This document shows positions 1 to 58,586 of a stretch of DNA of 64,000 nucleotides, piece after piece. The first letter of the stretch is position 1. Every line of letters starts with the position of its first letter. The DNA is from Trichosphaerium sp. ATCC 40318. Taxonomy: Eukaryota > Protista > Tubulinea. The position numbers and the translations under genes were made by a program. The stretch is from assembly GCA_038496445.1 (NCBI GenBank), contig JALMLS010000573.1, positions 284,917 to 348,916 of the forward strand, read 5' to 3'. The notes beneath the pieces are model-generated. The model saw nothing but the letters and a program-made list of their open reading frames with translations. It ran no database searches and was not told the DNA's origin.

Positions 1-3000
1 CAACTTTGTCATTTGTATCGAAAAGATTCAATGTTCTGTAATCTATTGCTGTTATAACAAGTCCACTTGTTTCATAACACTCAAGTTAAAATATGACAAT
101 ATCAGATTAAACGCACGTGGCATTAGATCTATCCCAAGTCTGAGCATAGTTCAATCGCGGATTTAGATCCCAGATGGTATCACTTTGTAATCCTTTCAAG
201 TATGTTTAGTATTTGAAAATATGGCATGTTACTTGTACCTGCATCAGTGAGATACTCTACTTCTGACTCGGATTTCTCTGTATTGTTACTCCACATGTCA
301 TCAGGTAGATCATACAAGATACCTTGCATTAATTGTCCATCTTCATGCCAGAAGTCCTTGAAAACAGAATGGGTTAGTGTATTTGCGATTCTGGTTAATT
401 TGTTGTTGACTTACTGGAGACTGAACAAGTTTGCGGTCAAAAGTACAAATCAAATACCGAACGCCCTTTTCTATAGCCAGTTTAAAATAAGATCTTTTTG
501 GCTAATGTACGATTAGTGTTAATGGTATGGTATTGAAATAATTAAACAAATCATACCAACTTCTGTATCCATCCTTTAAGATCACGTCTCCAGTGTTCGT
601 TTATGTTGATAACAGAACATGATTTCCATAGATCACAGCAATGTTTTCCATAGGGACAATGCTGTAAAAATGATACAAACAAGCTACTTGAGTGCGTCGT
701 AAATATATAAGAAACCATTTTCATAAATATGAAGGCAAAAAAGTCTTGCCACAGCCTTGAACTGGGTACAATGCCTTTTGTTGCTTTCAAAATAGCAAAA
801 AACAAAGCAGATATTCTTTTATCTAAAGTTAGCTTGAGTATCAAGAAAACCCATGTATACACTAATCACCTGAATCAAGTGAAGTTGTGTTTCTGTCTTC
901 ATCAAGTTCAATATCATCAATATTTGCCTTTGCTTTGAATGCAGTTTCTACACTGTCGATATTACCATAGCTAGCTATAAGGAGTGTTAGATTTATGGTG
1001 GTTTTATTCGGTACCTGCTATAATTAAAAGCGTTCTCCCATATTTATCAACAGCATCAATGTTTGCGTTTGCATTCAGTAATGTAGAAACAACTGTGTTG
1101 TGACTTTTAGCCGCTAATGTACAATGAGTGAGATGCAACTCAAGATAGTTGATACTATAACGTACTTGCGTACAATAAAGCTGTGTATCCAAAAATACTA
1201 TCAACAATTTCAGTATCTGCATTGGCGTTGATCAAAGTGCAAACAACTTGATTATGCCCATTACAAGCTAAGTTTTATGAGGGGTATTTGTTTTAAGTAT
1301 GAAATGTCACCTGCTTCAATTAATGCAGTCTTCCCTTCATATCCAACACCATCAATATTAGCTCCTGATCTAAGAAAGAGTTTGACATATTCGTTGTGGC
1401 CCTCGCTAGCTAGCTGGTGTGAGGTATTGAAAAGATATAGATCACTTTTTACCAGCATGATGTAATGCAATGTCAATATTAGCTTTTGCCTTGATTAAGG
1501 TATTCACTACTTCATTGTGTCCGTTAGATACTAAGAAAGTATGAGTTAGAAAGTGTTGCACTTAATATTTTGCCGTAACCTGCATGGGTTAGAGGTGTGC
1601 ATCTCAGTTTGTCAGAAGCATCAATGTTTGCATTGGCTTGTATCAAGGTCAATACGACTTCATTGTGTCCCTTTCTTGCTATTGTATTGTAAGTTTTCAT
1701 GGTTGCTCTGTTGTGCTTTTATATCACCTGCAACAATTAATGCTGTATTCCCACAGCTATCAGCTTTTTCTATATTCGCATTAAGTTGAGTCAAGGTTGA
1801 TACAGCTTTATTATGTCCACTGTCCGCTGGTGTATTGTCACATGTAACTAAGTGTATATTTTGACATTACCTGCGTGAATTAAAGCTGTGCCTCCATCAT
1901 TATCAACAGCATCAATGTTTGCCTTGGCTGTTATTAAAGTTGAGATTACTTCATTGTGTCCGCCACAGGCTAATATTTTTATAAGTTAGTTATTGTGCTT
2001 GCTTTGTTTTGTTTTGTACCTGCAACAAGTAAAGGTGTGTTTCCAAAATTATCAACCGCCTCAATGTTTGTATTGGCTTTAATTAAGGTTGAAACAACGT
2101 CATTATGTCCACTAGATGCTAGGCTATGTAAGTTATAGGTTGTTATCTAAGATGTTGATATCACCTGCGAGATGTAAAGCAGTGTATCCATTGTTATCCA
2201 CACTGTTGATGCTTGCATTTGCTTGAAGTAGTATTTTGACAACTTCATTTTGTCCGTTACATGCTAGATATTGTGAGCTGTACTAGAAGTTTAGATATAT
2301 TACAATTTACCTGCACCATGCAATGCTGTAATTCCATCGTTATCACCAGCATCAATATTTACGTTAGCTTGAATAAAGGCCGAAACAACATCGTTGTGTC
2401 CTCGTGACGCTTTGGTATTGTGAGTTTTAGGATGAAGTTGTAAGTTAACACATATAGAGATGGTCACTAACGGCCATAGCCGGTTAGCCGTTTAAATTTT
2501 TGTCTATAACCGGCTAAGAAAAATAAGGGAAAACTCAAACATTTTTTGCATTTTTTTTTGCGTGATACTAGGCTTTGGACGTGTATCAAAACATAAAAGA
2601 AGTTCAAAGCCATTGAGAGCCTTTAGAACTTAAAAAAGCATGCGGATTCATGGTACAACACCAACAAATTCTCACATTTTTAAACGGTCTAGCCGATTAC
2701 AGATTTTGTTACTGGATCGAACCGCGACCCCCTCTAACCACATAGTACCTCCAATAAGTAAAGCTTTGTGCGCATTATCTGTTTCGGTATTTGTACTTGC
2801 TCTGAGTAAGGCTGACACAACTGTACTATGTCCCATATATGCTAAAATAGTACGATTATAGTCAAGATATTGCGTCCATAGTGTGATCTCATACCTGCCA
2901 AAAAAAGAGCTGTATATCCATGGTTATCAACTACCTCAGTGTTTGCATTTGCTTTTATCAAGGTCAATATCACTTCATTGTGTCCGGCGTGTGCTAGTGT

Positions 3001-3462
3001 TGTTATTGAGCCACATACTTTTCGTTGTTTTCGATAGGAAGTGAGGATACCTGCATAAATTAAAGCTGTATCACCCGTGTTATTAACAGCATCAATATTA
3101 GCACGCGATTCAATTAGCAATTTGACGATTTCATTATGTCCTTTGTGGGCTAACAGGTCACGTGATTAGAAGCTTTTGTTAAGCTTTGCGCTACCTGCAT
3201 TAATTAGAGGTGTATTCCCTTTACGTTCACCAACAGCTTCGATATTAGCGCTTTCTTTGATTAATAATTCTACAAGCTCCTTGTTTCCTTTCTCCGCTAA
3301 GTAATGTGAGTTGCCTCGTTTTTCTTTGTTATTATTACCAGCATCAAGCAACGCTTCTTTTTTGTCACTAGCGGTCAGTCCTATTACGTAGATTAACAAA
3401 CAGGTACAAACTTCGTTACCAGTACCCTCCACCTGTGTATTTTTGCTCTGTGGTTCTGCCAT
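1..3462 (-). CDS. Ankyrin-repeat / PARP-like ADP-ribosyltransferase family gene 1 (multi-exon; 3' part runs off the left edge)
   Basis: ATG at 3462 (MAEPQSKNT), then about 15 ankyrin-type exons, mostly 99 nt with GT-AG phase-1 introns (e.g. 3051-3149, 2895-2993, 2311-2409, 2165-2263, 2020-2118, 1871-1969, 1728-1826, 1580-1678, 1311-1409, 1015-1113). Consensus is AxxGHNEVVxxLIxAxANIDAVDxxGxTALxxA. A linker domain follows (SRLWQDFF, DFWHEDGQLMQGILYDLP). Bases 1-450 are nearly identical to the pre-PARP part of gene 2. Confidence 0.9.
2455..2736. mobile_element. Non-autonomous hAT-type MITE inserted in an intron of gene 1
   Basis: Imperfect terminal inverted repeats TAGAGATGGTC...GACCCCCTCTA, flanked by a near-identical 8-bp duplication (aacacata 2447-2454 / accacata 2737-2744). 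It expands an otherwise ~50-nt intron. Confidence 0.7.
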
Positions 3463-4065
3463 GACGTGTTGCCACTCCTGAAGTATCAGTACAGCGTTAT
3501 TAAGTTAGGATAAATTGACTTGCGACAACAACACTGTTTCTTTCGCTACAGCTCCGTTTTTAAGAGCAGTACTTAATGCGTTATTATGTTATGATAAACG
3601 CGAAACAGCGTATTGGGAGTCACTCACAGAGGTTAGAAAAATATTGGCTTAAATCGAACATTTACTCAGAACAATTTTTTTCATAAAGATTTCCTTTAGC
3701 GAATTTTCTGATTGAGCAGCGAGTGCCCTAAATTAAAGGTGCAAACTAAAATGCGTTTTTAATGAATTTCACTTTGTCACGTGAATAATTTTGTGCCCAG
3801 ATTGTTTGTCTTCTACCTGGAGCATTAAGTACTGCTCTTAAAAACGGAGCTGTAGCGAAAGAAACAGTGTTGTTGTCACAAGTCAATTTATCCTAACTTA
3901 ATAACGCTGTACTGATACTTCAGGAGTGGCAACACGTCATGGCAGAACCACAGAGCAAAAATACACAGGTGGAGGGTACTGGTAACGAAGTTTGTACCTG
4001 TTTGTTAATCTACGTAATAGGACTGACCGCTAGTGATAGAGAAGGAGCGTTGCTTGATGCTGGTA
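3336..4065. repeat. Inverted repeat: 244-bp arms (3336-3579 / 3822-4065) around a 242-bp spacer
   Basis: The arms are reverse complements with about 5 mismatches. Each carries upstream sequence, ATG, exon 1, intron 1 and exon 2 of one of the divergent ANK-PARP genes. Confidence 0.95.
3580..3821. promoter_or_regulatory. Shared bidirectional promoter spacer between genes 1 and 2, containing GTCACGTGA (3776-3784)
   Basis: This is the only unique DNA between the two divergent 5' arms, and it contains an E-box-like palindrome. Function is inferred from position. Confidence 0.5.
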
Positions 4066-7000
4066 CCAATACAAGATTAAATAGATTACCAGTAGCTCAT
4101 ATAACCAAAGCAACAAGTGGCAACAACGAGATCGTCAGCACATTAATAAAATCGAACGTAAATATTGATGCTGTTGATAAATACGGAAATACTGCTTTAA
4201 TCCTTGCAGGTAACATCATATGATAGCACGTGCGAATAACACATCCTAGCAAAGCACGGAAACAATAAAGTCTTATCGACTTTAATCACAGCGAAAGCTA
4301 ACATTGAGGCTGTTGATAAATACGGAAGAACACCTTTAATTGTTGCAGGTGATATCAGATAGTTCACTTGTAACTTGTAACTCTAACGTGTTATCGCAGC
4401 AAGCAATATAGTAGCCACAGAATACAACAATAATGCTGTGTCCACTTTAATCAAATCCAACGCGAATGTTGATGCTACTAGTATACATGGAAACACAGCT
4501 CTACATCTTGCAGGTAACAGTTAAACATCACATCCAAAAAAACTGTTATTTACACAATACATAGCGGATAGTGGAAGCGGTTTAATCGTCTCCATGCTAC
4601 TAAAAGCTGGTGCAAATGCTGTTGCCATTAACAAGAAAGGATACACTCCCTTACTTTACGCAGGTATAGTTCTAAGATTTAGTTCATTCGCTGTAACTTA
4701 CCTTAACTTAAGCACAAAATGGGAACATGTATGATGTTGAAATGCTAATCAAAGAAATAACCAATACTGAAGAGCGCTCAAAATCTACTTCACGTGATTA
4801 TGGTGCTAATTACTCCAACATACATGTGGAATGTATTACTCAAACTTCTTTAGATCAACTATTAACTTCTTTGTTTGTTAATAGTTTGAAAGCCACAGGC
4901 GGAGTTTTACCAACTTCAAGATTGTGGCAAGACTTTTTTGTCTGTGTATTTGTGAGAGTGATTTCCAACAAACAAGTGTTCATTCCGCTGTTTGAGACTT
5001 TCTTAAAACACTGCCCTACTTATGAAAGCTGTAATCTATGGAATTCTTGTTTGCTCACAATTGCTAACAATAAAAATGTTTCAGTGGCCACTGACGAATG
5101 GCTAAGGTACTTGGTACGATATAAGTTCATTCTTAAAATTTTACTACCATTCCGACTGACGAAATATACCTTAGCCAACGCGTTCTTATTTTAAATTGGT
5201 GATGGAAAAGGGTATTTGCCGTTTAATTTGTACTTTTGACCGCAAACTTGTTCAGTCTCCAGTAAGTCAACAACAAATTATCAGAAATCGCAAATACACT
5301 AACATTTTGTTTTCAAGGACTTCTGGCGTGAAGATGGACAATTAATGCAAGGTATCTTGTATGATCTACCTGATGACATGTGGAGTAACAATACAGAGAA
5401 ATCCGAGTCAGGCGTAGAGTGTTTCACTGATACAGGTACAAGTAACATGCCATATTTTCAAATACTAAACATACTTGAAAGGATTACAAAGTGATACCAT
5501 CTGGGATCTAAATCCACGATTGAACTATGCACAGACTTGGGATAGATCTAATGCCATGTGCGTTTAATCTGATATTGTCATATTTTAACTTGAGTGTTAT
5601 GAAACAAGTGGACTTGTTACAACAGCAACAGATTACAGAACATTGAATCTTTTCGATACAAATGACAAAGTTGCTGTCAGAGAACTACAGATCCTCAAAC
5701 AAAAAATGTCAAAACTACATGGTTACAACGATTTCAGTCTTGTTGAAGCCAAGCTTGTGTGTAATGACACCTTGAATCAAAACTTTGGAAACGCCAATAG
5801 AATACTGAAACACAGACATCAGTATGTTTTTTTTTTTTTAATTCAACTTTACCAAACGTATGTAATTTTGCTAACCTGAACTTAGAGGATTACCGAGACT
5901 GTTTAAAAAACAAGATTGGAGAGAAGATAATATCAACAAGGAATACAATGACGCCGTTTACAAAAAGTATGATAGCCTTGTTAAACATGACGCAAGTTAT
6001 AATGATGCCAACACTTCACAAGATGTAACATTCTTCTGTTTTTTTTTCTTTAGAGTATTGAATCACTAACAAAAGCTGTTTAGGTACCAGTGATATTGAT
6101 GGTTCATGGAACAACTCAAAAAGCAGCTTACAGTATTGTACAAGCTGGATTCGGAACTGTGAGTGCATTGGATGCTGGTTACTATGGCCAAGGCATCTAC
6201 TTTACAGTATGTTTAAAACCATTAAATCACCCCCTTTTCACTTTTTTACCCCACAGACAAGTATACAATACGCTTGTTCATACGATCTATCTGGCACCAC
6301 TGAAAAAACTCTGATTTTGAGTCTTGTCACTCCTGGCAACGTATATCCTGTACGCAAGTGATTTGAGTATGTTGTTCATTTAATAATGTTCTTCAAAGGT
6401 AAAACCAAACGACAAGTTAAGAGGACAACCAATTAAACCAGGCTACCAAAGTCACTACACTTTGGTTGATCGATTGGGTAGACCTCTCAAAGAACGTAAA
6501 CTTGCCAATGCAGTGTATGATGAGCTTGTTGTTGCCCAAGGTATTCCTTTATCCAAACACTTATACTATGTTTTATTCTGACGATATTAGATGTTCAAGC
6601 TGTTGCTCGTTACATCATCAAAGTTGTACAGAAACCCAAACAGCCCAAAACAAACCAAACAAAATCGTCTAAGAAGGAAGATAAACATGCCAAGCATACC
6701 AACAAGCCAAGCGGAAAAGATATTGATGATTCAGATGATGAGCTTTCTGACACTGAAGATGAGAAGTTTATTAGTAAACGGTACAATCATCACAAATTTC
6801 TTGTGTTCTGTTAACTTTATTGTACTAGAAAACTATGGGCATCTACTTCGCCACTTGACGAGGCACAGAAAAACAAAGTAGAACAAGAGCCAGGTAAGAA
6901 TATAAGTTCACCAAAGGGCCAACACGCAGACGCTGAACTCCATTTTGAACAAGAAGTACACAACGAGGTTGATCAACTACAGAGAACAAACGCCATCTTA

Positions 7001-7144
7001 AAAGAAAGCGCTGTTTCCTTAAACCAAGAGAATGCAAACCAACTGCAAAGCATCGCCAGCTTAGAAGAGAGTAATGCTATCCTAGAGGAAAGAAATGCCT
7101 TTCTACTTGCCAAACTTGCTAAGCTTGAGAGCGCACAGAAGTAG
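3939..7144 (+). CDS. Ankyrin-repeat / PARP-like ADP-ribosyltransferase / coiled-coil gene 2 (complete, multi-exon)
   Basis: Four 99-nt ankyrin exons (4111-4209, 4250-4348, 4415-4513, 4565-4663) plus a partial fifth, then the linker domain. ART motifs: LMVHGT, DAGYYGQGIYFT, YACSY, YDELVVAQ. The coiled-coil tail ends LAKLAKLESAQK, TAG at 7142-7144. Confidence 0.9.
5226..5673. repeat. Outer inverted-repeat arm: near-identical reverse complement of bases 1-450, introns included
   Basis: Base 1 pairs with 5673. Exons and introns (gtaagtcaacaacaaatta..., gtacaagtaacatgccatattttc...) match almost base for base. The arm probably continues beyond the window on the gene 1 side. Confidence 0.9.
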
Positions 7145-26052: not shown

Positions 26053-26966
26053 CTATGGCTCAGCATGGACGAAAGGTACACCATTCGTGTAAATGTAGTG
26101 AAATGATAATGAATAAGAACGGAATCTCTTATCCCATTTTTTGTATTCTCCCTCCTTCTTACCGTTTGAATAGTTGCATAGTACTGAAGGAAGTCCACTT
26201 GGGAAATACTTCTGACACCTTCCTTCTTTTTTATTGTTTTTGAAATAACAACGCCTCCTCACTTGTCCGTTTGGATACCAAATCGTATATTGTCCTTGTA
26301 AATATCCATAATTGTAAGAACACGTCTCCATTACCTGTCCTGTAGGATACCACCTATAACACTTACCGTAAGCCAAAACAACTGATAAACAAACAGAATA
26401 TCAGACTTTTACAACCCTTTTGCTATTTAAACAGTGTAGATGAATACCTCTTGAATACGCCATGCTTAAGACCATATTTGTAGTGACATTGCATCTGAAG
26501 AGTTGGTTTGTCAAGCTTAATTTCAAGCGTTTTATAAGGATAAGGATCACCTACACAAAGCCTTTAATAATGCTAATGATAGCGTCAGTCAAAGTGAGGT
26601 TGTCATTACCTGTCTTAACCCTATAGGCCACAGCATCGTAGGTATACCATCTAGTATATTCTCCATGCTTGAAGCCATGATCATACCAACATTGGCTTAC
26701 AATGTGCCCTTGTTTTATTTCCATCCATTTACCATGCTTATTTAATGATCCATCGTATCTTGTGCTTATTGCTGTGTCACGTGATAAACAAGGCCAAATT
26801 TTATAAACTGTCAGGCTTAGATCTAATATGTAGTAGTGGAGCTCAAGAGGGAGGTGTAACAGCAAATTACAGCTGTTTTCTCGCGAAATGCAGCTGCTCT
26901 ACTGGTTGATAAATACTTAGGCAACGAATCGTCATGCGTTATCTGTAGGTGTACCTTATTCTCCAT
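26053..26966 (-). CDS. F-box-like + MORN-variant repeat protein
   Basis: Spliced start MENK|SSCIS.., then an F-box-like LLHLPLELHYYIL. Repeats of the form Y..G.K.G.Y..WYPNGQ follow. Confidence 0.75.
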
Positions 26967-32990: not shown

Positions 32991-33822
32991 CTACTTGTTT
33001 GTAGTTTCAAGTTGGGCTATTTTCTCAAGCAGAATGGCTTTTCTTAGACTATTACCGGTCTCAGTTAAGTTGTCAATGTGTTGCTTTGTCGAATTATCTT
33101 GTTTCAGGTTGGCATTGCTTTTTGTTATTTTGACAATGTCTTTCTTTAGGCCGTTGACACTTTCCGTCAAATTGTTGATGAGTTGCTGCTTATCTTGCTT
33201 TAAGTATATTGTCGTTGCCTTGTGTTGGTTTGCTGTAAATTTTCATGATTTTCCTCCATATTCTCATTGCTCTTCTTTAGTTTGTTCATCTCGTAGTTTG
33301 CTTTCTGTAATTCTATGTCGAGATTGCATAGTTGCTAGTTGATTGCTGGTCATCAGTTGAGTACACATGGGCAGCCCATAGTTTTCTGTGCAACAATATG
33401 AGGTTAAATAAAAGGATGTGATATCTTACCGGTTAGAAATACAATTATTGTCATCGTCAGAGATCATCTATCTTTAATTTTGTTTTTTTGTTTTTTTAGT
33501 TTGGGTATAATTTATAGTACCTCGAGCAACAACAAGCTCATCGTACACAGCATGAGATACTCTATTTTATTTGAGAGGTCTAACTAAGCGATCTTATAAT
33601 TATTGGCCATAGTATCCAGCATCCAAAGAGCTCACTGTTTCCATCTTTATCAACATTGGCATTGACTAAAATTGATACGATGTTATTGAATCCCATTAGT
33701 GCTAAATAGTAACGTGAATAGCATGTATTTTACCTTGTTGTGTGATATTACCTGTCCAAATCAAAGTTGTCTGTCCACATACATTCACAGTTTCAATGTT
33801 GGCATTGGCATGGATTAACATA
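32991..33822 (-). pseudogene. Deleted and frameshifted ANK-PARP family pseudogene
   Basis: Collinear remnants of gene 3: coiled-coil end, KLWAAHV, YDELVVA (~33525) and TVSSLDAGYYGQ (~33605-33640), abutting two broken ankyrin exons. Confidence 0.85.
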
Positions 33823-34391
33823 CCAAAGTAGGATTCTCAGAGAAAGTTGCTAACCTAGAGATGACGGTAGATAATTGGTTAAAAAATTTGTTTTTTGCAG
33901 ATGATCTTCTTCTTCTAGCCAGCTCTACAGACGATATAGAAGAAAAGAACTACTGGCTAGACAGATATAGCAAAGCGACGGGATTACAAATCAATAAGAA
34001 GAAATGTTTTCAAGCAAATATTTCTGGTCTAAATGGCTACAATAGTAAAGTTTTTGATACAGGTACAAGTATTAGGTATCTAGGCTTTAGTCTGAGTGAC
34101 GATGGACTGAATTTTGATTGGAACAGTACTAGAGAGAAAATAACAGTACAACTAGTAAAGTGGAAACCTCTGTGTAAAACAATTCGTCAAAAAATTAATA
34201 TTTTCAAATCGTATGCCCAATCCCAACTAATCTATTTCACCAGACCTCTCTCAATCCCTCCTAGTGCAACTGCTAAACTCATTAATATGTGTAATTGGTT
34301 CCTGTGGGATGTTTCTCGTGTCTTTGACAAGAAAAAGAAATATTCTTGTGTGTCATGGTCACAACTTTCTCATCCATTCTCTCGGATTTAA
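33823..34391 (+). mobile_element. Non-LTR retrotransposon reverse transcriptase fragment (L1/Tx1-like)
   Basis: FADDLLLL, ATGLQINKKK and IRYLG motifs. Same family as the fragment at 57.7-58.6 kb. Confidence 0.85.
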
Positions 34392-38029: not shown

Positions 38030-38575
38030 GGTTGTCACTTTCTAATACTAAAAAAAATAGTAGTGAGCTAGCTCAGGTTGTATTTAATTTATGATACTAC
38101 CATTAAGCAAAACTGTGTTTCCTTGTGCATCAATAATATCAACATTGGCTCTAGCTTCTATTAACATTGATACAATTGCCTTGCCCTTCTAGTACTAAAA
38201 TAATAGTGTAAGCACGTTGTTGTAGCTCATTTTGTGATGGTACCAGCCCACATCAAAGCTGTGTTTCCATCTGCATCAAAAGCATCAACATTTGCTTTGG
38301 CATTGAATGCTGATACAACTTGTCAAATCTGAAAAATGCTAGGGTGTTGTCATGATCCAATGTATGATCTAGTGATTTTACTTGTATTATCCAAAGCTGT
38401 GTTTCCACTTTGATCAACAGTATCAATATCGGTGTTGGCCTTAATTAACATTGATAAACTTCATTGTGTACTTTTGGTGCTAAATAGTAGAGTGATATGT
38501 AGATGTTTATCTCATCTATCATGTTACCTGCACAAATTAAAGCTGTATTTCCATATTTATCAATAGCCTCAATTG
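38030..38575 (-). pseudogene. Degenerate ankyrin exon/intron units related to gene 3
   Basis: Four to five broken units. The intron ctaaatagtagagtgatatgtagatg...catgttacctg closely resembles the gene 3 array intron. Frame-disrupting deletions are present. Confidence 0.75.
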
Positions 38576-41928: not shown

Positions 41929-44900
41929 CTACTTGTTTGTTCTTTCAAGTTGGGCTAGTTTCGCAAGTAGAGTGGCGTTTCTCTCTTGTACGTCAGTTAG
42001 GCTTTTCCTTAAGGTGATGTTATCTTGCTTCAGGATGGCATTGGTTTTGGATAAGTTGACGTTGTCTTTCTTTAGGTTGTTGACACTTTCTTTAATGATG
42101 GCATTACTTTCTGTTAATTTGACGTTGTCTTCCTTCAGGTCATTGACACTTTCTATCAACTTGACATTGTCTTGCTGTAGGTTGTTGACACTTTCTGTTA
42201 GGTTGATGATGTGTTGTTGCTTGGTTGAGTTGTCTTGTTGTAGGTTATTGACACTTTCTGTTAGGCTGATATTGTCTCGCTTCAGGTCGGCATTGTTTTC
42301 TGCTATTTTGGCAATGTCTTGCTTTAGATTATTGACGGTTTCTGTCAATTTGATGATGCGTCGTTGCTTGATCGAGTTGTCTTGCTCTAACTTCGCATTA
42401 TACTGTTGTTGGTTTGTATTGTTCTGTTGTAATTTCTCAAGAAGTTCCTTCATATTCGCATTACTCTTCTTTAGTTTGTTCATCTCGTAGTTTGCTTTCT
42501 GTAATTCTATGTCGAGATATACATCATTGCTAGTTGATTGCTGGTCATCAGTTGAATCCACATGGGCAGCCCATAGTTTTCTAGTACAACAGCGTAAGTT
42601 TAAATTCAAGCAAAACATGTGACTTCTTACCGGTTACTAGTAAAATTATCATCATCAGAGTCAGAGATATCATCATCTGAACCTTCATTTTCTTCTTTGT
42701 TTTGTTTCTTTGTCTTTTTACCACCTTTCTTGGGTTTTTTTGTTTTCATTCGTTTTTTGATTTGATTATCTTTCACTGCAACTTTGATGATGTAACGAGC
42801 AACAGCTTGAGAATCTGATTGCAAAATCAAGTTAATACAATTTTTTGGTAGTAGTTGCTCCTGTACCTTGTGCAACAACAAGCTCATCGTATACCGCGTT
42901 GGCAAGTTTATTTTCTTTGAGAACTCTACCTAAGCTATCTACCAATGCAAAATGACTTTGGTAGCCTGGTTTTATTGGCTGTCCTCTTAACTTGTCTTTT
43001 GGGTGTACCTTTTTGCAAATTAGATACGACAATAAAATTGATTACATACAGGATATACATTGCCAGGAGTGACAAGACTCAAAATAAGTGTTTTCTCTTT
43101 CTTTCCTCCCTTATCATAAGAACACGCATATTTTATACTCCGCTGTTGTGAAAGAAATGAATATAGTGTTACATTATTATCGCGTACTGTGAAGTATATC
43201 CCTTGGCCATAGTAACCAGCATCTAAAGCACTCACAGTTCCAAAACCAGCTTTTACAATACTGTAAGCTGCTTCTTCACTTGTACCATGAGCCATCAATA
43301 TCACTGGTGACTAAACGTAGGTTAGTACAAATAGCTTTTTTTTAACAAACATTACCTCTTCTTTTGAAGCGTCCTCGTTATTGGTACTTGAATCTTTTTG
43401 CATTGGTGTGGAATTGTGTTGTTTGTAAACACTCTCTTTGTACTTTTTATGTATGCCATTTTTCCAATTTTGTTTTTTAAACAACTTGGCAAGTCCTCTA
43501 CAAGTACATACTTAGACACATTAAAACAGGGTATAATAATAGAGTACTGATGTCTATGTTGTAGTATGTTGTTGAATTGTCCAAAGTTGTCATTCAAGAT
43601 ATCATTGTAAACAAGAGTCGCTTCAACAATATCGTATTGGTCATAGCCGTGCATTTTGGACATCTGTTGTTTGAGGACGTTGAATTCTCTTACAGCCACT
43701 TTGTCAGTTGTATCAAGCAGATTCAGTGTCCTGTAGTCAGTCGCCTTTAAATCAATGCCCCTTTTTAAAATAAACTGAAAAAACCCCAAATGGTAATAAG
43801 TTTGAACGCACGTGCTGTTAGATCTGTCCCAATTATTTGCAAAATGCAACCTCAGATTTAACTCCCGCGTGTTTTCAGCCTTAATTCCTTTGTGGTACTT
43901 TAGTGTTTGTAGCAAAACAGTGACCTTGATACCTGTAGTAATATCTTCAAAGTATTCAATTTGATCGGTGTTGCTCCAGGCATCATTGGGCATATCAAAC
44001 AAGATGCCTTGCATTAATTCTCCATCTTGTTTCCAGAAGTTCTAGTAAAAAGCAAACAGTATAAAGTTTACATGTGGTTTGTGGATTCGTACTGCAGACA
44101 AAGCAACTTTGGGATTGCACACAGAACAAATTAAATAACAAATGCCCTTTTCCATTGCCAGTTTAAAATAAGAACGGGTTGGCTGAAGGTTGTAACAATT
44201 AAAACAAGTAAAGCATTTCAAAGGTAGCATACCAAGTACCGAAGCCATTTTCTAGGATGTTTAAGATCTTGTTTCCACTGCTCGAAGTATGCTTTGTTGT
44301 ATTGAGTCATTTGCATTTCCAATCTGTTCCTGTTTGTGGAGGACATAAAGGATGAACAAGATTTCCACAATGCATGGCATTGTTTGCCACTTGGACAGTA
44401 TTTTAAAAAAGTTACAAACGCTTCAACAGCTGCTGGAGCATTTGATATCACTTGTTTAAATAACGATAAAAGAAAATCTTGCCACTTTTTCTTATCTGGT
44501 GATATAACTAAAACCCAACTGTTAACTATTGTTTGTTTCAAACAAATAGAGTTACAAGTGTGAAATTGCAACAGTACCTAAATCAACATTGTTTCTATTT
44601 TCATCACCAGCGTTCTTATTTAAATGTGCTTTAAGTAATATTGGTATAATTTCATTATTTCCTCTTTGTGCTAAATAGTAACATAAGCTAAACTTGTAGT
44701 ATTTCTTTTGATGTAACCTGAAAAATGTAAAGCTGTATTTCCATCTTTATCAACAGCATGAATATTGGCATTGACATTGAGTAATGTTGATACAACTTCA
44801 TTGTGTCCTTCTTGTGCTAAATAGTAGAGTAAGGTATGTACATGTTATATCTCATTATATCATGTTACCTGCATAAATTAAAGCTGTTTTTCCATCTTTA

Positions 44901-46609
44901 TCAACAGCATCAATATTGGCATTGGCGTTGAGTAATGTTGATACAACTTCATTGTGTCCTTTTAATGCTAAATAGTAGAGTGAGGTATGTACATGTTATA
45001 TCTCATCATATCACATTACCTGCACAAATTAAAGCTGTCTTTCCATCTTTATCAACAGCATGAATATTGGCATTGGCGTTGAGTAATGTTGATACAACTT
45101 CATTGTGTCCTTCTGATGCTAAATAGTAGAGTGAGGTATGTACATGTTATATCTCATCATATCATGTTACCTGCATAAATTAAAGCTGTCTTTCCATCTT
45201 CATCAACAGCATGAATATTGGCATTGGCGTTGAGTAATGTTGATACAACTTCATTGTGTCCTTTTTGTGCTAAATAGTAGAGTGAGGCATGTACATGTTA
45301 TATCTCATCATATCATGTTACCTGCATAAATTAAAGCTGTTTTTCCATCTTTATTAACAGCATGAATATTGGCATTGGCGTTGAGTAATGTTGATACAAC
45401 TTCATTATGTCCACACGATGCTAAATAGTAGAGTGAGGTATGTACATGTTATATCTCATCATATCATGTTACCTGCATAAATTAAAGCTGTTTTTCCATC
45501 TTTATCAACAGCATGAATATTGGCATTGGCGTTGAGTAATGTTGATACAACTTCATTATATCCACACAATGCTAAATAGTAGAGTAAGGTATGTACATGT
45601 TATATCTCATCATATCATGTTACCTGCATAAATTAAAGCTGTTTTTCCATCTTTATTAACAGCATGAATATTGGCATTGGCGTTGAGTAATGTTGATACA
45701 ACTTCATTATATCCATACAATGCTAAATAGTAGAGTAAGGTATGTACATGTTATATCTCATTATATCATGTTACCTGCATAAATTAAAGCTGTTTTTCCA
45801 TCTTCATCAACAGCATGAATATTGGCATTGGCGTTGAGTAATGTTGATACAACTTCATTGTGTCCTTCTTGTGCTAAATAGTAGAGTAAGGTATGTACAT
45901 GTTATATCTCATCATATCATGTTACCTGCACAAATTAAAGCTGTTTTTCCATATTCATTAACAGCATGAATATTGGCATTGGCGTTGAGTAATGTTGATA
46001 CAACTTCATTGTACCCGCTTTGTGCTAAATAGTAGAGTAAGGTATGTACATGTTATATCTCATCATATCATGTTACCTGCATAAATTAAAGCTGTATTTC
46101 CATATTTATCAACAGCATGAATATTGGCATTGGCGTTGAGTAATGTTGATACAACTTCATTGTACCCGCTTTGTGCTAAATAGTAGAGTAAGGTATGTAC
46201 ATGTTATATCTCATCATATCATGTTACCTGCACAAATTAAAGCTGTTTTTCCATATTTGTCAACAGCATGAATATTGGCATTGGCGTTGAGTAATGTTGA
46301 TACAACTTCATTGTGTGCTAAATAGTAATTTGAGATATGCACCATGTTGTATCTCATATAAAGCATTACCTGATCTAATAAAGGCTGTGTTTATATCTTC
46401 GTCAACAGCACAATTGTTTACTATCACTTTAAGTAACATTGAAACAATTTGAGTGTAGCCATTTGTTGCTGTACTTGGTCAACTATTTGCTTATCAATGC
46501 ATTACAAACCTGCAAAAGAAAACACAATTTCAATTATGGGGAGATGGATGTTGTTGGTTGGTTCTTCCTGTTCTAAATGTTGGTTTTCGTCACTTTGTGA
46601 TTCTGTCAT
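41929..46609 (-). CDS. Ankyrin-repeat / PARP-like ADP-ribosyltransferase / coiled-coil gene 3 (complete)
   Basis: ATG at 46609 is preceded by the same GAGTG(A/G)CAACACGTC as genes 1 and 2. About 13 ankyrin exons and the linker domain follow. ART motifs: LMAHGT, DAGYYGQGIYFT, YACSY, YDELVVAQ. A long coiled coil ends at the stop at 41929. Confidence 0.92.
42040..42380 (-). repeat. Coding tandem repeat (21/42-nt heptad units; SVNNLQQDNVKLTE) in the gene 3 coiled coil
   Basis: Repeated ttgacactttc...ttgtcttg blocks, translating to reiterated 14-21 aa units. Confidence 0.8.
44718..46327 (-). repeat. Tandem array of 11 ankyrin exon+intron units, period 151 bp (99-nt exon + 52-nt intron)
   Basis: Exon lower ends at 44718, 44869, 45020, 45171, 45322, 45473, 45624, 45775, 45926, 46077 and 46228 (the last has an in-frame 9-nt deletion). 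Confidence 0.97.
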
Positions 46610-47875: not shown

Positions 47876-48904
47876 TTAGGGCTCCATCTCCAAAGCTGCG
47901 CGTGTTTTACTGGCCATGGAGCGTTTGATGCGTCTGCGCTGATCGGCATCTATGACGATGTAAAGTAAAACTGCGTTGGAGCGCCAATCTCCGAGGTCAC
48001 GGACGATTGGCAAGGAGGCCCCCATCTTGAAGGCCCACGTGGCACCGCCACGGCGAAAGGAGTGGCCAGCGTATAGAGCAGGGTCATAACCTAGCAGGTT
48101 CATTATCTGTTTCGTGCGAGCAACGAAACGTGAGTATGTGAGCGTCCAGCGAGAGCCATTTATAATGGCGGCGAAGATAGGTCCAGAGCGAGGAGCCACT
48201 TTGTCGAGGAGCGTTGAGAGGTATGGAACTGGAGAGATCTCCAGTCCAGAGTTGACAATTTCGATGGATAAGATTCGTGATCGGTCCCGAATCGTCTTGG
48301 TCTTGGTGAAATTGAGAGTGAATCCGTCAGCGTGTCGAGTGATGATACTACGGCAAAGGTGGTATCCAGGAGCAAAGCTGCTGACGGATTTGGGTACTAG
48401 TTGACCGGAACGAAGGAACGTGTCAAAGGCTGTAAGGGCAGCTGTGTAGTAGATGAAGTCTTTCGTGTTGTTGAGGTCAAGAACTTCTTTCATGCGTACC
48501 AGTATCCGTGGTGATATTGGGTGTTTCCGTCGAATGCCATGAGGGTTGCATTTGGAAATACCGCTCATGAGGAGTTGGAAACGAAACATTAGGTCGGTAC
48601 GTAGAGGAGGGAAGCTGTACCATTGCGCATAGAAGCGCACAGAAGTGATGTATTTGTGAATGGTCGAGGGTGAGAGTTTGAATCCTCTGAACATGATCGT
48701 GACAACGTCGCACAGGTTAGATTCAGTGATAGGGAGAGGTGAAGTGTTGAGAAGGATTGTTGCTTTCAGGTAAAATCTCCAGCCAGATCTATAAGATGCC
48801 CAAGTGCCTTTAGCTAAAGCCGCTTGGAGGAGGATATTCTTCTTCTTCTCTAACCTGTTCCAGTCCATGGTTGAGGGTCTAGTTTGAAGTTTTGCGAGGC
48901 GCAA
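47876..48904 (-). CDS. Tyrosine recombinase of the DIRS-like element
   Basis: FLRSG (catalytic R), KTKT, GHSFRRGGAT (HxxR), GDWRS and the terminal Tyr in LLY. Confidence 0.93.
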   Translation of the reverse strand: MRLAKLQTRPSTMDWNRLEKKKNILLQAALAKGTWASYRSGWRFYLKATILLNTSPLPITESNLCDVVTIMFRGFKLSPSTIHKYITSVRFYAQWYSFPPLRTDLMFRFQLLMSGISKCNPHGIRRKHPISPRILVRMKEVLDLNNTKDFIYYTAALTAFDTFLRSGQLVPKSVSSFAPGYHLCRSIITRHADGFTLNFTKTKTIRDRSRILSIEIVNSGLEISPVPYLSTLLDKVAPRSGPIFAAIINGSRWTLTYSRFVARTKQIMNLLGYDPALYAGHSFRRGGATWAFKMGASLPIVRDLGDWRSNAVLLYIVIDADQRRRIKRSMASKTRAALEMEP

Positions 48905-50430
48905 AAGATGTGACAGGCGTGGAGGTCGTTACGAGAAAGCAAATCTGTGATGGTGTTGTCTTCAGACGAGATGTGTTGAGTCGTCAGACGGAAGTGAAAA
49001 CGCGCTTGAAGGTTGTGAATGGAGCGGATGAGAGGCATAGCTCCTTTGACCTTTGTTGTGAGGCGATTGATGGCAGCCTCGGTGTTGGTGTTGTCAGTGT
49101 ACACTTGGCAGATGGTGTGACCTGAGAAAAGATGTGAGAACACAACGATACCCTTATAAAGCGCGTATATTTCTCGCCAAGCGATTGAGAGACGACGTTG
49201 TTCGTCATTGAAGGCTCCCATGAGCCAATGTCCGTTGTAATATACCCCATAGCCCCAATCTGAGGTGTCAGCAGTGAAGAATTTATGATTTTCAGGTAAA
49301 GGATCCACAAGTATCGCTTTACTGTTGAAATGAGACATGAAGTTAATCCACCAGGCGATGTCGTCTTGGAAGGCGCTGTTGAGAGATACCCAGTGGTAAG
49401 GACGCGAGGCGGCATTCATGCAAGTGAGGATGCATTTAAGGTATGTACGTCCGCCATATATGACTTGAGAAGCCCAGTTGAGTTTGCCCGCAAGAGATTG
49501 GAGATCTTTCTTGCGAGCTTTCTTGCGATTTCTGAAAAAGAGCAAGAGGTCCAATGTTTCTTGGAGTTTAGAAGCCGAAAGGCGAGCTTCACGCTTGACG
49601 GAGTCAAGTTCAACACCCAAGAATGTGATGGTGGTGGAAGGTACCGAGATTTTGGAAGGTTTGACAGTGAAACCAAGAGAACGAAGAAGGGTGACGAGGG
49701 CGTCACGTACTTTGACACAAGTGTCGAAGTCTTTAGCAGCGATGAAGAAATTGTCAACATAAACGGTGACGTATATCCAACAATCTTTAGCGAATGATTC
49801 GCATACTGCTTGTGTGAGAATGCAGAAAATGTATGCTGCAATGTTGAGTCCAAAGGGCATGCGAGTGTCGAGGTAGTATCTACCATTCCAGAAGAATACG
49901 AGGATTCTCCAGGAGTCACGAGCCATAGGTACAGCTCGATAAGCTTCACTGATGTCGATCTTAGCCATGAAGCAAGCGAGGCCTAAGATGAACATGAAGC
50001 GAATGGCTTCAGCGATACCTGCCATTTTGAAATGTGGAGGCACATTCATGTCGTTGACAGATCGGCCTCGAGGTGCGCTGAGATCAACCACGCGGCGTGC
50101 TTTGCCGTTGGATTTAACTACGACACCTAGGGCATTGGAGCGGAAGGGTTTGGAAGAGCAAGGAGCTATTCTTCCGAGAGAGAGTTCGTGAGAAACGTCA
50201 TCACTGAGTAATTTCTCGTGTTCGAAGCAAGAGGAATAATTGTTAACAAATGTAGGCTCAGAGGGAGCATTTTGGTTAACCACGCTAACGCCATAAGTAA
50301 GCCAGGCGACAATAACGGAACGCAGAGGGTGATCAGAAAGCATTTTATTCCAGAGGTGAACACGAATAGTAAGGGGTGAAAGGACTACCCCTTTTGGCAA
50401 CATATCAGTCGCGAGAATGACGTCTCCCAC
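48850..50430 (-). CDS. Reverse transcriptase / RNase H of the DIRS-like element (catalytic motif mutated to YVDN)
   Basis: RRVVDLS, KIDISEAYR, MPFGL, YVDNF, FLGVELDS, LAGKLNWAS, IAWREIYA, YTDN, DLLSR. Confidence 0.93.
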   Translation of the reverse strand: MGDVILATDMLPKGVVLSPLTIRVHLWNKMLSDHPLRSVIVAWLTYGVSVVNQNAPSEPTFVNNYSSCFEHEKLLSDDVSHELSLGRIAPCSSKPFRSNALGVVVKSNGKARRVVDLSAPRGRSVNDMNVPPHFKMAGIAEAIRFMFILGLACFMAKIDISEAYRAVPMARDSWRILVFFWNGRYYLDTRMPFGLNIAAYIFCILTQAVCESFAKDCWIYVTVYVDNFFIAAKDFDTCVKVRDALVTLLRSLGFTVKPSKISVPSTTITFLGVELDSVKREARLSASKLQETLDLLLFFRNRKKARKKDLQSLAGKLNWASQVIYGGRTYLKCILTCMNAASRPYHWVSLNSAFQDDIAWWINFMSHFNSKAILVDPLPENHKFFTADTSDWGYGVYYNGHWLMGAFNDEQRRLSIAWREIYALYKGIVVFSHLFSGHTICQVYTDNTNTEAAINRLTTKVKGAMPLIRSIHNLQARFHFRLTTQHISSEDNTITDLLSRNDLHACHIFCASQNFKLDPQPWTGTG

Positions 50431-50436
50431 GAGATT

Positions 50437-51744
50437 TCATGGATCGATGGTCTTCGTGGCGTCTTGAGCAGTCTTTTTGGGCGTCTTGGGCGTTTTGGAT
50501 CTTTTCGATGGCGCGTTCGAGCTGTCGGATGCTGTTTCCTTTGTTCTCCTCGAGCACTTGGAGTCGTTTCCTGATAGATCGGAGCGCATCTGCAAGTCCA
50601 GCTGTCGAATACTCCTCGGACCGGTCCACCTTAGATCTTTGGAAATAAATGAGAAAATGTGCTCCAAATAATTGACATAGTCAATTAAAGCACCAAAAGT
50701 AAGAGAATTCTCTTTCACCATGGAGATGAATTTGAGAATAGCGCGCATGTTAAGCATGGCAAACTCGACTGGGCTGTAACTCGTATCGCTGAGGAGCTCT
50801 GTGCGAGACGCTCCGGAAAGCAAAAGGGAGTTACAGCTGCGTAGAGTAGAAAGAAAAATCACGGGTGCACGTGCAGAAGGTACTAACCGTTTCTTGCGAG
50901 AATCGTCAGGGTGATCCTCAGGTGAACGAGAACGCTTCGAGCGTTTTGAAGGAGCAGCAGGGTCCAGGTACTCACGTTCCAAATTCTCCTCTAAAACATC
51001 AATTTTGTCAGCAGGGACAAAATAATCACCATCGGAGTCAGACTCCTCATCAAGCATACCAGCAGCGATCGGTGGAGAGGAGCGGCGACCAGAAGACTTA
51101 GAGCCATTAGTCTGCTTAGTGGAGTCAGCAGAGGAGCCAGTGCGTCTTGCTTCTTTTGCAGTTCTCGAAGGAGCTGCGGAGGAAGGAGAGGACGAAGCTG
51201 GTGACTGAAACGACTTCATGGATTGCGCCAATACGGTCATCTGTTCGAGGATCTTGCCGAGTACCAAAGCTTGAGAAGGAGCTGGAGCCAATGTGGTTGG
51301 GGATTGGTTTGGAACTATGAGAGAGGGGTTAGAGCTGTTCGAAGTATGTGAAAGCAAGAAATCGGAAATTTCTTGTGAAATAGGGGCCAGGCGGCCTTTG
51401 TCGGTGAAGAAAATGTTTGGGCATCGCAAATGGTCGCGGCAAACACGAACGAAAAAGTTTAGGAAATTTTTCCGAATTGACAAATCTGTTTTAATCCAAG
51501 AAGAAGGAAAATCTTTGCTGACGCCGCTTTGGAAGCAAGACGAGAGCGCGTCAGATTCAGAGCTACGGCCTTTTTCGCCAGAAGTAACCAAAAGGTTTTG
51601 AAGGGTTTCAAAAGAGGAGTCGTAGTCTGTAATGCCTGTGACATCGGAAGTTGAAGGAACATTTGAAGTAGAAGTCATCTCAGAGGTTGACGATAGTTTA
51701 TTTTTGAGGGAAAACAGGAAGATATATTGCGATGTGGAACGCAA
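50437..51744 (-). CDS. Gag-like ORF1 of the DIRS-like element
   Basis: Long Ser/Pro-rich ORF immediately upstream of the RT, with the same composition. Assigned by position. Confidence 0.7.
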   Translation of the reverse strand: MRSTSQYIFLFSLKNKLSSTSEMTSTSNVPSTSDVTGITDYDSSFETLQNLLVTSGEKGRSSESDALSSCFQSGVSKDFPSSWIKTDLSIRKNFLNFFVRVCRDHLRCPNIFFTDKGRLAPISQEISDFLLSHTSNSSNPSLIVPNQSPTTLAPAPSQALVLGKILEQMTVLAQSMKSFQSPASSSPSSAAPSRTAKEARRTGSSADSTKQTNGSKSSGRRSSPPIAAGMLDEESDSDGDYFVPADKIDVLEENLEREYLDPAAPSKRSKRSRSPEDHPDDSRKKRLVPSARAPVIFLSTLRSCNSLLLSGASRTELLSDTSYSPVEFAMLNMRAILKFISMVKENSLTFGALIDYVNYLEHIFSFISKDLRWTGPRSIRQLDLQMRSDLSGNDSKCSRRTKETASDSSNAPSKRSKTPKTPKKTAQDATKTIDP

Positions 51745-52867
51745 TAGAGGGAATATGCACTAGTCACAACTAGTCTTTTCGCATGAATAAAACATCGTTC
51801 ACATCACGCAATTCTTGCGTTCACATGACACGTTTACTTCATCATAAAAAAATTCATCAATAAGTTTATAAATTTTTCAATTAGTTGCCTGCAATGGTTG
51901 ACAGGCATGTACACTACCAATTAAATAAGTTTTATTTGTAAAAAAACTATACGGGCTTCAGTATTGCCAGCTGGAAATCAGGCAAGCTCCTTTTGGTGTA
52001 TGGTAGTAGCATAAATTTATACATTTATACTTTGGTAACTTGTTACATTTCACGGCTTAACATGTTATTTTTCCTTGAGATTTCCTAACGTTCTCAAACT
52101 CTGAATATTTGAATTTGAATATTTGAATACACCAAAAATAGCAAATTTGAATCTTTCTGTTTTATATTTGAATATTTTTAGAACACCAAAATGCAACTTC
52201 AGGCAAGCAACATCACACACCAAAAAAGGCACTACAAACAAAGATCCAACGTTCACAAGTACTACACAGACAATAGATGTGTTTTGTCAGACTCTTGTTC
52301 CTCCTCAACATGGCACCACTTCCAACCAGCTCAAGCATTTGCGCAAAGATCATGGATACAAAAGTAAAGAAGACGAATTTCCATGGCATGGAAAAACTAA
52401 ACAAGCTCAAGTAATGGAAGACTTTTTGGTAACAAAAGTGTTATACCTGTATCAAAAAGAAACAAAAGGTGCACACGCTCATTTACTCCTTTCTTTTCTC
52501 TATATTTACTTTCTTTTTTTAGCACATTGACTAACTTGTGACAAAGCTGATTGTGGTTGGTAACTTACCACTAAACTTGGTGCAAAACCCTCAATTTGTT
52601 GACTTGATGCGGGAACTGATTGCAGGCTACACATTACCCTGTCCAAATACCATGAGAGGCATAATTGACGAAAAGTACAAGAGCACAATGCGTGACTTAA
52701 AAAAAGAAACACAAAGAGCCAAATACCCTACATTTGCTGCTGATCTTTGGAAATGTAGTCACAAAGGATTATTATTGTGCAGTAACATTGCATTGGCTAA
52801 CAGATGATTTTAAACCAAGATGAGCTCTCATTGGGTTACCATAAATGAAGGTAACCATAAACTCCTA

Positions 52868-54824: not shown

Positions 54825-56406
54825 TTAGTTTTGCACCCAAAATTGTCACACCTAAAATTCAACAAAATTAACGGCTTTTAGGAAATGTGGGCGTAGATTA
54901 GAGAATAACCAATATATTATATGATAGGTTATTCGACTACTTCTACACTACAATACAGAAAATACTGAGGTCTATTTGTGTTTCTGTTGTTGAGCTTCAA
55001 ATAATTCTTTTGCTGACTTTTGATTTAAGCAATCAGGACACATGCCATAATTATTGCAATGAGCACACCATGACCACTTTTTACTACTTCTCCATACTCT
55101 TTCAAGGCATCTTTTACAAGTTTGTGCTGCTATTCTATGAGAGGTTAGCATGAAAACTAAATAAAAAAAAAATTTTAGTAAACTTGCTGTGATTTTTTCT
55201 CCCTGTCTAGCCATTGTTTTTTTAATTTTCTTTTTTGTGCAGCCTCACTACGCTTGCGTTTCTTACTGGCCATTTCTTCTTTTGACTTCATTTCCGCTTG
55301 TTTGTTTTTTCAATTTCACAGAACTGATCTGTGATGATTGGTACATCCTCTTTAACTGTGCCCTTCACTCGTTTCGGTGGCTTTTAGCGCTGAGTATCCT
55401 CTATTAGCTCCTGCATGCCAGTCAGCAACATTTGAGATGCCTTTCATCCACAGGTTTTTCAGAAACACCAGCATTTTTTTTTGCTCTTTCAATTATTTTG
55501 TTTCAATTGTATGGATAGATACCCACTTTTTCCCAGGCAGCTTTTATTACTGTAGGTGTTAAAGCTAGTCTTGTGGCTTCCGGTACAAAGAGTGAATTTA
55601 AGGGTAGCACCTCATTGGTAACACGGCTGATCTGCAACTCTTTTTGCCTTAACTTTTGAAATTCTTGGGTGACATGAGCAAATGGGCAATTATCCAGTGG
55701 CTGAAAGAAGTGAGATGAATGTGAGGACAAGCCAATAGTGATTACATTAGCCTCACAGCATTTATGTAAAACTGTCATATCAAGATGGGAACTGAGGCAA
55801 TCCAAAATTAAAAATGCTTTTCTGTCCCCTTGATACATTGAAAGGTGGTATAAAAATCTGTTGATAATTAAAGACCAGATATCTTTTGTTACATACGCTT
55901 TCCTATGATATATGTGATATTTTGGAAATCCAGATCGAGTCTTCACAGGTCGTCTGACAACTTTTTTGTTTTGCAGTTTTACCTGGAAAAAGATAAAACA
56001 CCACAAGGACTCTGCCAGCAGCTGTGACGAATGAAATCAATGTGATGCGTTTACCACCAATTATGTCTTGAGTGCCAACAGTTTTTTTTCTTTGATTCTC
56101 CCATGTGGTGAGAAGTAGCCTGTTGAACTTGAAAACAAAAAAAATTTTCATCAACATTTATTACTAATTCTGGATTCAATGGTGTTACACCATTGGATAC
56201 TGTGTTCTAGAGTTGTTTCTGATGTTCTCTCAGCAGTGATTGCCTTTGCCTTTGTAGCAATGAGTATTGGTGCCCATCTTTTCTTAGCGCTTCTTTTAGT
56301 GCTTTGTCCATAACATGTGATGTGGGTTTGTATAGTGGTAGTTTCAACGCTTTTCAAAGGTGCAACACTTTTGGGTGCACTGCGACAATTTTGGGTGCAA
56401 AACTAA
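54825..56406 (-). mobile_element. pogo/Tigger-like DDE transposon (decayed) with 26-bp inverted repeats
   Basis: ITLISFVTAAG, LILDCLSSH, SHFFQPLD..PF, AWEKVGIYPYN and a Cys-rich tail. TIRs: ttagttttgcacccaaaattgtcaca (54825-54850) / tgcgacaattttgggtgcaaaactaa (56381-56406). Confidence 0.88.
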
Positions 56407-57684: not shown

Positions 57685-58586
57685 TTATTTGAATAGAATT
57701 GAAATCTTTTTTGTATTCAAAGAGTTTGCTTGAAAGCATTTCTTTTCATTAATCTGAAGACCAGTTGCTTTTCCATATCTTGTTAACCAATAATTCATTT
57801 CATCAATATCATCTATGGAGCTAGCTAATAATAACAGATCGTCAGCAAAGAACAGGTTTTTAAGCCAATTCTTTAGGCACATCTCAGCACCCTTGATATA
57901 AGCTTCATGATTTATGATCCAGTTGAGCAGTTCCACCATTAGTGTGAAGAAATAAGGGCTTAGTATAGGATTTTCTTGACCTGTACCTCTCTTTGTACAG
58001 AAGGTTTCTTTGCTAACGACATTGTTGATTCTTACTTGAACATCTAATTTGAGAGCTTGAACTAACATTTTAGCACTCTTGTCAGAGAATCCTATTTTTG
58101 TTAGGAATAATTTTAGCGCAATATGGCTACAGGAATTGGAAGCTTTTTTGAAGTCATATGCAATCATTTGAAAATAGGAATAATCGTACCCTTACATAGA
58201 AACTGATCTACACAACCTTGTTTGATAAATGTATTAAATAGACTTGTTAGTGACGGAACAAAAGTTTCCCTCATAGATATGTATACGCACGCTGATAAGC
58301 CATCTGGGCCTGGAGCTTTATTAGAAGGCATGTTGTTTATTACTTCCTCTATTTCTTCTTCTTCAATAGGAACATTTAGTTGTTCTTCCAATTCTACAAA
58401 GGCCTTAGGTTTCCATAAACTACTTACTTGGTTAAGGACTTGTTCATCTATTTTAAGGTTGTCATATAGATTTTTGTAAAATCTGACACTTGTTGAAAGT
58501 ATTTCTTTTATATCTTTTGAAGACGTGTTGTTCCATGTGCACTTTAATTCTTCAACTAGAGCTAGATTACGTAAGCATCCACACAT
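57685..58586 (-). mobile_element. Non-LTR retrotransposon RT fragment (frameshifted, internally deleted)
   Basis: NKAPGPDGL, IIPIFK, DFKKA, RGTGQ..ILSP..F, FADD. Confidence 0.88.

Follow-up and report, generated by a model that had tools for sequence, protein, structure and literature searches.

Genes in which exon length corresponds to a multiple of a protein repeat arise when intron/exon modules are duplicated locally (Street et al. 2006, as summarized in PMC4585158). Exon 4 of human ANK1 encodes exactly 33 amino acids (aa), and its loss preserves the reading frame (PMC5762591). In fungal NLR-like proteins, the ankyrin arrays are homogenized, polymorphic in repeat number and variable at concave-face residues, an arrangement that has been read as a diversification device (PMC4986451). 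Homogenization of exon and intron together is described for the exon-intron pairs of the spider silk MaSp2 genes (PMC9779670), and concerted evolution for the exon-intron repeat pairs of tenascin-X (Hughes 1999, cited in PMC9779670). A literature search for ‘99 bp’ ankyrin exons or for genes with one repeat per exon brought up no direct precedent. A 64,000-nucleotide (nt) stretch of DNA from Trichosphaerium sp. ATCC 40318 (contig JALMLS010000573.1, positions 284,917–348,916; hereafter the window) contains three paralogous genes, A, B and C, that combine these known features and join them to a PARP-like enzyme.

The window has the composition of eukaryotic DNA (∼36% GC), and its GT-AG introns are short, mostly 39–70 nt. 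The three genes were modeled by motif and splice-site scans followed by explicit spliced models, in which all coding sequences are open (Table 1). All three begin with a short N-terminal exon and an N-cap exon; the ankyrin array comes next and is followed by a linker domain, a PARP-like ADP-ribosyltransferase (ART) domain and, at the C terminus, a coiled coil. The arrays comprise 32 ankyrin exons (15 in A, 4 in B and 13 in C), all bounded by GT-AG splice sites and all in phase 1-1. Twenty-five of the 32 exons are exactly 99 nt long, and the remaining seven span 78–105 nt, always in multiples of 3. The exon lengths run 102, 99, 99, 93, six times 99, 78, 99, 102, 99 and 105 nt in gene A and 99, 90, ten times 99 and 93 nt in gene C; gene B contains four 99-nt exons, the first of which gives a Pfam Ank_4/Ank match (4113–4208), plus a partial repeat within a 401-nt exon. 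The N-cap exon, which measures 42 nt in A and B, is likewise in phase 1, and the non-ankyrin exons mix phases 0, 1 and 2.

The initial annotation of this DNA had proposed that each repeat is a separate in-frame exon, mostly of 99 nt with exceptions of 78, 90, 93, 102 and 105 nt, and that the split always falls inside helix 1 (...TALxxA / AxxGH). The spliced models of all three genes bear out each of these points. Every split lies within the codon after ...TALxxA, usually an Ala codon, at position 9/10 of the Pfam Ank profile, where helix 1 makes its last turn, and intron position and phase are identical in all ankyrin units of A, B and C. The proposed repeat counts of about 15, 5 and 13 hold for A and C, but gene B has four stand-alone exons and a fifth repeat that is partial and fused to the linker. 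The arithmetic behind the claim that skipping, duplicating or swapping any ankyrin exon leaves the reading frame intact is also sound, as all 32 are in phase 1-1. Likewise, the junction does fall between two groups of codons: those for the hairpin contacts (DxxGxT) close one exon at its 3′ end, and the helix-1 ‘xx’ codons open the following exon at its 5′ end. Half of the contact patch of one structural repeat comes from each of these two exon ends.

Duplication of a 33-codon (99-nt) unit with a single intron necessarily gives symmetric exons that share one phase. The symmetry is an automatic by-product of module duplication and no evidence of design; on its own it adds little, being the expected footprint of a process already known from classical ankyrins. 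The layout resembles the second class of Street, Rose & Barrick 2006, which includes the membrane-binding domain of ANK1-3 and has one 33-residue unit per symmetric exon with a fixed intron place and phase. In A, B and C, exon length equals repeat length, intron position and phase are constant, and the unit introns are homologous. Unlike in ANK1-3, the introns are ∼50 nt long and the units of the gene C array, introns as well as exons, are still almost uniform. The partner domain differs too, being a PARP-like ART domain rather than ZU5, UPA or death domains. The junction between the C-cap repeat and the linker lies within one exon in B (4713–5113) and is split by an intron in A (974–870/822–557) and C (44670–44578/44507–44233), so that this intron would have been either lost in B or gained in A and C.

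The gene C array is a 151-nt tandem unit (99-nt exon plus 52-nt intron) present in 10.6 copies with 94% matches (TRF). Exons C3–C12 are 92–98% identical to each other at the nucleotide level. The 52-nt introns are nearly identical and less diverse than the exons (π of 0.029 vs 0.087). As in MaSp2 and tenascin-X, tandem exon-intron units are homogenized together with their introns, but those genes encode structural repeats of fiber or matrix, whereas gene C is a binding scaffold with localized hypervariability. The fungal NLR arrays (Dyrka et al. 2014, PMC4986451) share with the present family near-identical repeats in differing numbers, recombinational concerted evolution and a variable concave face. 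The combination of at least 85% repeat identity with a variable binding face that marks those arrays is found in gene C (C3–C12) and not in A or B. Unlike the fungal NLRs, A, B and C lack a NACHT or NB-ARC domain (none by Pfam in the window pieces or in P0003, a homolog described below) and have an intron in the repeating unit, and repeat numbers are compared here between paralogs. The exons of A and B, unlike those of gene C, are only 60–77% similar to any other exon in nucleotides. The 5′ parts of the A and B introns align with the gene C unit past the exon end (GTAACATnATATGAT).

Two degenerate arrays of ankyrin exons lie on the minus strand at 38055–38573 and 33654–33818 and are 69–86% similar to the exon-intron unit of gene C. 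Both retain the C-type intron but are disrupted: a stop codon and a frame change interrupt them, and truncated exons measure 60–75 nt; an ART domain is absent nearby. The 38-kb relic still aligns with the gene C unit. These arrays are probably decaying copies, judging from their sequence.

Recurrent differences among the gene C exons are confined to codons 2, 3, 5, 23, 24, 25, 27 and 32. DARPin chains from the PDB can be aligned with the repeat units of gene C at full-sequence E-values down to 1e-31, and in this alignment codons 2 and 3 correspond to x13/x14 and codons 23–27 to D-x2-x3-G-x5, which puts the variation in the hairpin and in helix 1. The positions randomized in DARPin libraries were reportedly listed by Binz et al. 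in 2003. Five of the six positions on this list are among the variable codons of gene C (hypergeometric P ∼0.001, calculated by hand). Nonsynonymous diversity in the array is 0.25 at the six DARPin-equivalent codons vs 0.04 elsewhere. Gene C thus resembles a DARPin library in its constant framework and in its variation at x2, x3, x5, x13 and x14, but it is natural, its position 33 is invariant, and D1, H16 and position 10 also vary. The localization of the changes, rather than a rate test, points to diversifying selection on the contact residues.

Genes A and B are arranged head to head in a palindrome, whose inverted repeat arms (3330–3579 and 3822–4071) are 97% identical. Identity between the two genes is 97–100% from ∼120 nt before the start codon to the end of exon 2 and collapses at the exon-2 donor (A ∼3340, B ∼4062). 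It amounts to about 52–78% in the linker exon (60–78% over most of it) and returns to 97–100% inside the intron that follows (A ∼480, B ∼5200), such that positions 1–480 of A are 97–100% identical to 5200–5673 of B. Both breakpoints are located at or in introns. The ankyrin cassettes between them (15 vs 4 exons) exhibit no positional orthology. Derivation of B from A by deletion was considered and rejected, as no B exon is more than 77% similar to any A exon. The initial annotation had suggested comparing the relationships of individual exons with those of the ART domains; the two disagree, because the cassettes are unrelated in position despite flanks, including the ART region, that are 97–100% identical. 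Two histories would fit this mosaic. The palindrome arms may have been homogenized by gene conversion that ended at a heterologous cassette, or ectopic recombination may have put another cassette in place of one of the two. In either case the recombination has its endpoints in introns.

The exon layout is best read as the known outcome of duplication of an exon-intron unit, continuing recombination and constitutive splicing, a reading to which we assign a probability of about 0.65. The three genes would represent a paralogous family of ankyrin-repeat/PARP-like ADP-ribosyltransferase/coiled-coil proteins with introns of roughly 50 nt. Its ankyrin domain would have grown by tandem duplication of a module composed of one 33-codon repeat and one short intron. 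As the intron interrupts the codon for the second helix-1 Ala and each module has 99 coding nt, each copy would inherit a phase-1 intron. Unequal crossing-over and gene conversion between near-identical units would then shift the repeat number in frame and homogenize the array, while differences would persist at target-contact codons. Gene C may represent the young, active state of this process, and A and B older, diverged arrays. Recombination with intronic endpoints would exchange or isolate the ankyrin cassettes, while the promoter/N-cap and ART parts around them stay constant, as in A and B. Each gene would be spliced constitutively into one main protein, whose ankyrin surface would aim the ART domain at its target.

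Diversity could instead be generated at the RNA level, with symmetric cassette exons variably skipped so that one gene yields many ankyrin surfaces. Any skip of a phase 1-1 exon stays in frame, and the donors and acceptors of gene C are so similar that, in principle, each donor might be spliced to any acceptor downstream of it. The transcript contigs, however, display a single arrangement. In the public run X2, judged to be cDNA-like from a SMART adapter present as a loose end, a contig of 2,697 nt contains CT..AC joints exactly at the predicted introns of gene A. In every 197-nt bin its depth equals 15.4 × (model exon bases/197). This contig holds all 15 ankyrin exons of gene A, including the 93-nt exon (2841–2749), with the 339-nt intron spliced out. 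An X1 contig covers gene B 4564–4661 and then 4713–4745, which joins the last ankyrin exon (end 4663) to the linker exon. Each of the 15 joints inspected, of 31, connects neighboring exons, and no exon-skipped isoform but only full inclusion was seen in the transcript contigs of A and B, although contigs can miss rare isoforms. Introns of 39–70 nt in other eukaryotes usually have splice sites that are paired across the intron, which makes exon skipping rare and favors intron retention. Retention of most introns here, including 11 of the 12 52-nt introns of the gene C array, would introduce a frameshift or a stop codon. Splicing-based diversity in A, B and C is unlikely because only full-inclusion transcripts were seen and the introns are very short, and combinatorial skipping as the reason for the layout is given little credence. 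The proposal that the architecture suits diversification by splicing or intron-mediated recombination consequently stands for recombination, on the evidence of the gene C array and the A/B mosaic, but not for splicing.

A purely neutral history would make the layout and the repeat counts leftovers of old duplications and of the birth and death of paralogs, with no role in diversification. The architecture does follow automatically from module duplication, the A and B exons are old (60–77% alike), pN/pS does not exceed 1, and the array at 38.05–38.6 kb has decayed. Such a history is nevertheless unlikely, as the exons of gene C are ∼3-fold more diverse than the introns between them, and recurrent differences on five of six DARPin positions are hard to obtain without selection that keeps contacts different during homogenization. 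Programmed or somatic exchange, in which expressed genes would receive exons from silent ankyrin arrays by way of the conserved intron, much as in lamprey VLR assembly or antigenic variation, appears highly improbable. The degenerate array 6–8 kb from gene C with a C-type intron kept at 80–86% identity and the intronic breakpoints of the A/B cassettes speak in its favor, but that array is pseudogene-like (stop codon, frame change, truncated exons), the reads examined contain no DNA joint or variant form, and the only linked recombinase belongs to an ordinary tyrosine-recombinase retroelement.

Several points weigh against unit duplication with continuing recombination and constitutive splicing. 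The gene C model is built on perfect periodicity and homology, and the transcript evidence comes from A and B. Assembled contigs drop rare variants, so minor skipped isoforms of A and B may exist. The test for dN/dS above 1 on the gene C array failed, with a Nei-Gojobori pN/pS of 0.82. The A/B mosaic could result from gene conversion of the flanks alone, with no exchange of cassettes needed, and the change of repeat number by crossing-over is deduced from paralogs within one genome.

A bolder extension of the recombination reading is that the family constitutes an evolvable receptor-effector repertoire of the protist. Short introns would serve as homology tracts, exons or cassettes would be exchanged among paralogs including decayed arrays, and the new surfaces would aim the ART domain for immunity or self/non-self recognition. 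We regard this extension as doubtful. A repertoire of this kind would be an exon-based functional analog of fungal NLR repeat shuffling, a parallel held just as tentatively. If the recombination reading is true, the family represents a naturally occurring library of enzyme-linked ankyrin binders and a new setting for fungal-NLR-like repeat shuffling with localized hypervariability, in which introns act as the recombination substrate. The interest of the family lies in this possible natural library of binders aimed at an enzyme rather than in exon symmetry.

The region from 5318 to 7144 in gene B encodes a putative PARP-like H-Y-E domain followed by a coiled coil, with mixed intron phases. The PF00644 PARP match has an E-value of 2e-5 on a gene C piece (43023–43310) and 2e-7 on the homologous protein P0003, and it is also found on gene B 6084–6206; the matches are weak, and only that of P0003 exceeds the Pfam cut-off. 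The motifs HGT, GIYFT and YDELVV in the models are candidates for a PARP-like His-Tyr-Glu triad. This order of an ankyrin domain followed by a predicted PARP-type catalytic domain (PARP match weak, E 2e-7 on P0003) is shared with tankyrase (PARP5a/b), whose catalytic domain has a His-Tyr-Glu triad. In contrast to tankyrase, the family has a different linker domain, for which no Pfam family match was obtained, a C-terminal coiled coil and no SAM domain (none by Pfam in the window pieces or in P0003). Pfam likewise identified only PARP and coiled-coil regions, with no ZU5-UPA spectrin-binding or death domain, in the post-ankyrin pieces and P0003.

When 1.84 billion representative proteins were searched with the 133-aa linker exon, P0003 alone proved to share the linker domain; two further matches were repeat proteins and spurious. 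The JGI contig that encodes P0003 (2.6 kb) appears to be a spliced transcript, since the 590-aa open reading frame (ORF) is uninterrupted, and the upstream part of the contig encodes at least seven 33-aa ankyrin repeats. A homolog search with P0003 found P0004 as the only other close relative, the rest being distant PARP proteins; A, B and C are absent from the collection. In the ART half, B, C, P0003 and P0004 share about 47–56% mutual identity (52% in aa between C and B), which indicates that the family is old. A metagenome scan yielded only remote relatives that have a PARP domain but lack ankyrin exons, and a protein atlas search returned generic PARP clusters only. Public protein sets thus contain hardly any member of the family, with just two transcript-derived relatives.

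Table 1. Positions and strands of the modeled genes, their exons and associated features in the window.
Feature	Position	Strand	Description and basis
Gene A	start codon 3462, leaves window at left edge	minus	coding sequence open up to the edge
Gene A exon 1	3420–3462	minus	start codon 3462–3460; 43 nt, phase-1 end; model; 100% identical to B exon 1; X2 cDNA contig coverage
Gene A exon 2 (N-terminal capping helix)	3339–3380	minus	42 nt, phase 1-1; joint 3296→3339 in X1 and X2
Gene A ankyrin array	870–3296	minus	15 exons; all AG/GT, phase 1-1; X2 contig joints and bin depths match
Gene A ankyrin exons 1–8	3296–3195, 3149–3051, 2993–2895, 2841–2749, 2409–2311, 2263–2165, 2118–2020, 1969–1871	minus
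Gene A ankyrin exons 9–15	1826–1728, 1678–1580, 1530–1453, 1409–1311, 1267–1166, 1113–1015, 974–870	minus
Only long intron of gene A	2410–2748	minus	339 nt; X2 depth falls to the spliced-out value
Gene A linker and first ART-side exons	1–822	minus	linker exon 822–557; ART-side exons 356–239, 192–117, 65–1; model
Palindrome center	3580–3821	none	unique 242-nt spacer
Gene B	3939–7144	plus	763 aa; spliced model
Gene B exons 1 and 2	3939–4062	plus	exon 1, 3939–3981; exon 2 (N-cap), 4021–4062; spliced model, A/B comparison
Gene B ankyrin exons	4111–4209, 4250–4348, 4415–4513, 4565–4663	plus	each 99 nt, phase 1-1
Gene B 401-nt exon	4713–5113	plus	fifth ankyrin repeat (C-cap), partial, continuous with the family-specific linker domain
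Gene B ART-side exons	5318–5435, 5482–5557, 5609–5821, 5886–6024, 6084–6206	plus	model
Gene B ART-side exons, continued	6257–6349, 6399–6540, 6591–6780, 6829–7144	plus	stop codon 7142–7144; model
Gene C	46609–41929	minus	1126 aa; spliced model
Gene C exon 1	46510–46609	minus	ATG at 46609; 100 nt, phase-1 end; model
Gene C ankyrin array	44578–46468	minus	13 exons; TRF and model
Gene C first, second and last ankyrin exons	46468–46370, 46317–46228, 44670–44578	minus	second 90 nt, last 93 nt
Gene C ten 99-nt ankyrin exons	46175–46077 to 44816–44718	minus	151-nt period
Gene C linker, ART and coiled coil	41929–44507	minus	linker exon (44507–44233), PARP-like ART exons, long C-terminal coiled coil; model; PF00644 match 43023–43310

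The DNA around the ankyrin-ART genes appears to be rich in repeats. Rfam and ARAGORN gave no matches anywhere in the window. The 339-nt intron of gene A contains an inserted repeat that ends in a tRNA-like GGATCGAACC motif and is possibly a tRNA-derived short interspersed nuclear element; ARAGORN called no tRNA in this intron. A GC-rich block (46–48%) at 47879–51759 on the minus strand, ∼1.3 kb upstream of gene C, contains long ORFs of 350, 528 and 440 aa and has a weak phage-integrase (tyrosine recombinase) match (E 0.012). Its sequence looks like that of a DIRS- or Crypton-like retroelement. By eye, the ORFs at 33819–34388 (plus strand) and 57688–58610 (minus strand) resemble reverse-transcriptase fragments, and those at 55506–56036 (minus strand) and 62634–63086 (plus strand) resemble DDE-transposase genes. 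Further ORFs at 26056–26898 on the minus strand contain MORN-like repeats (YxNGxxxGxxxxY...).

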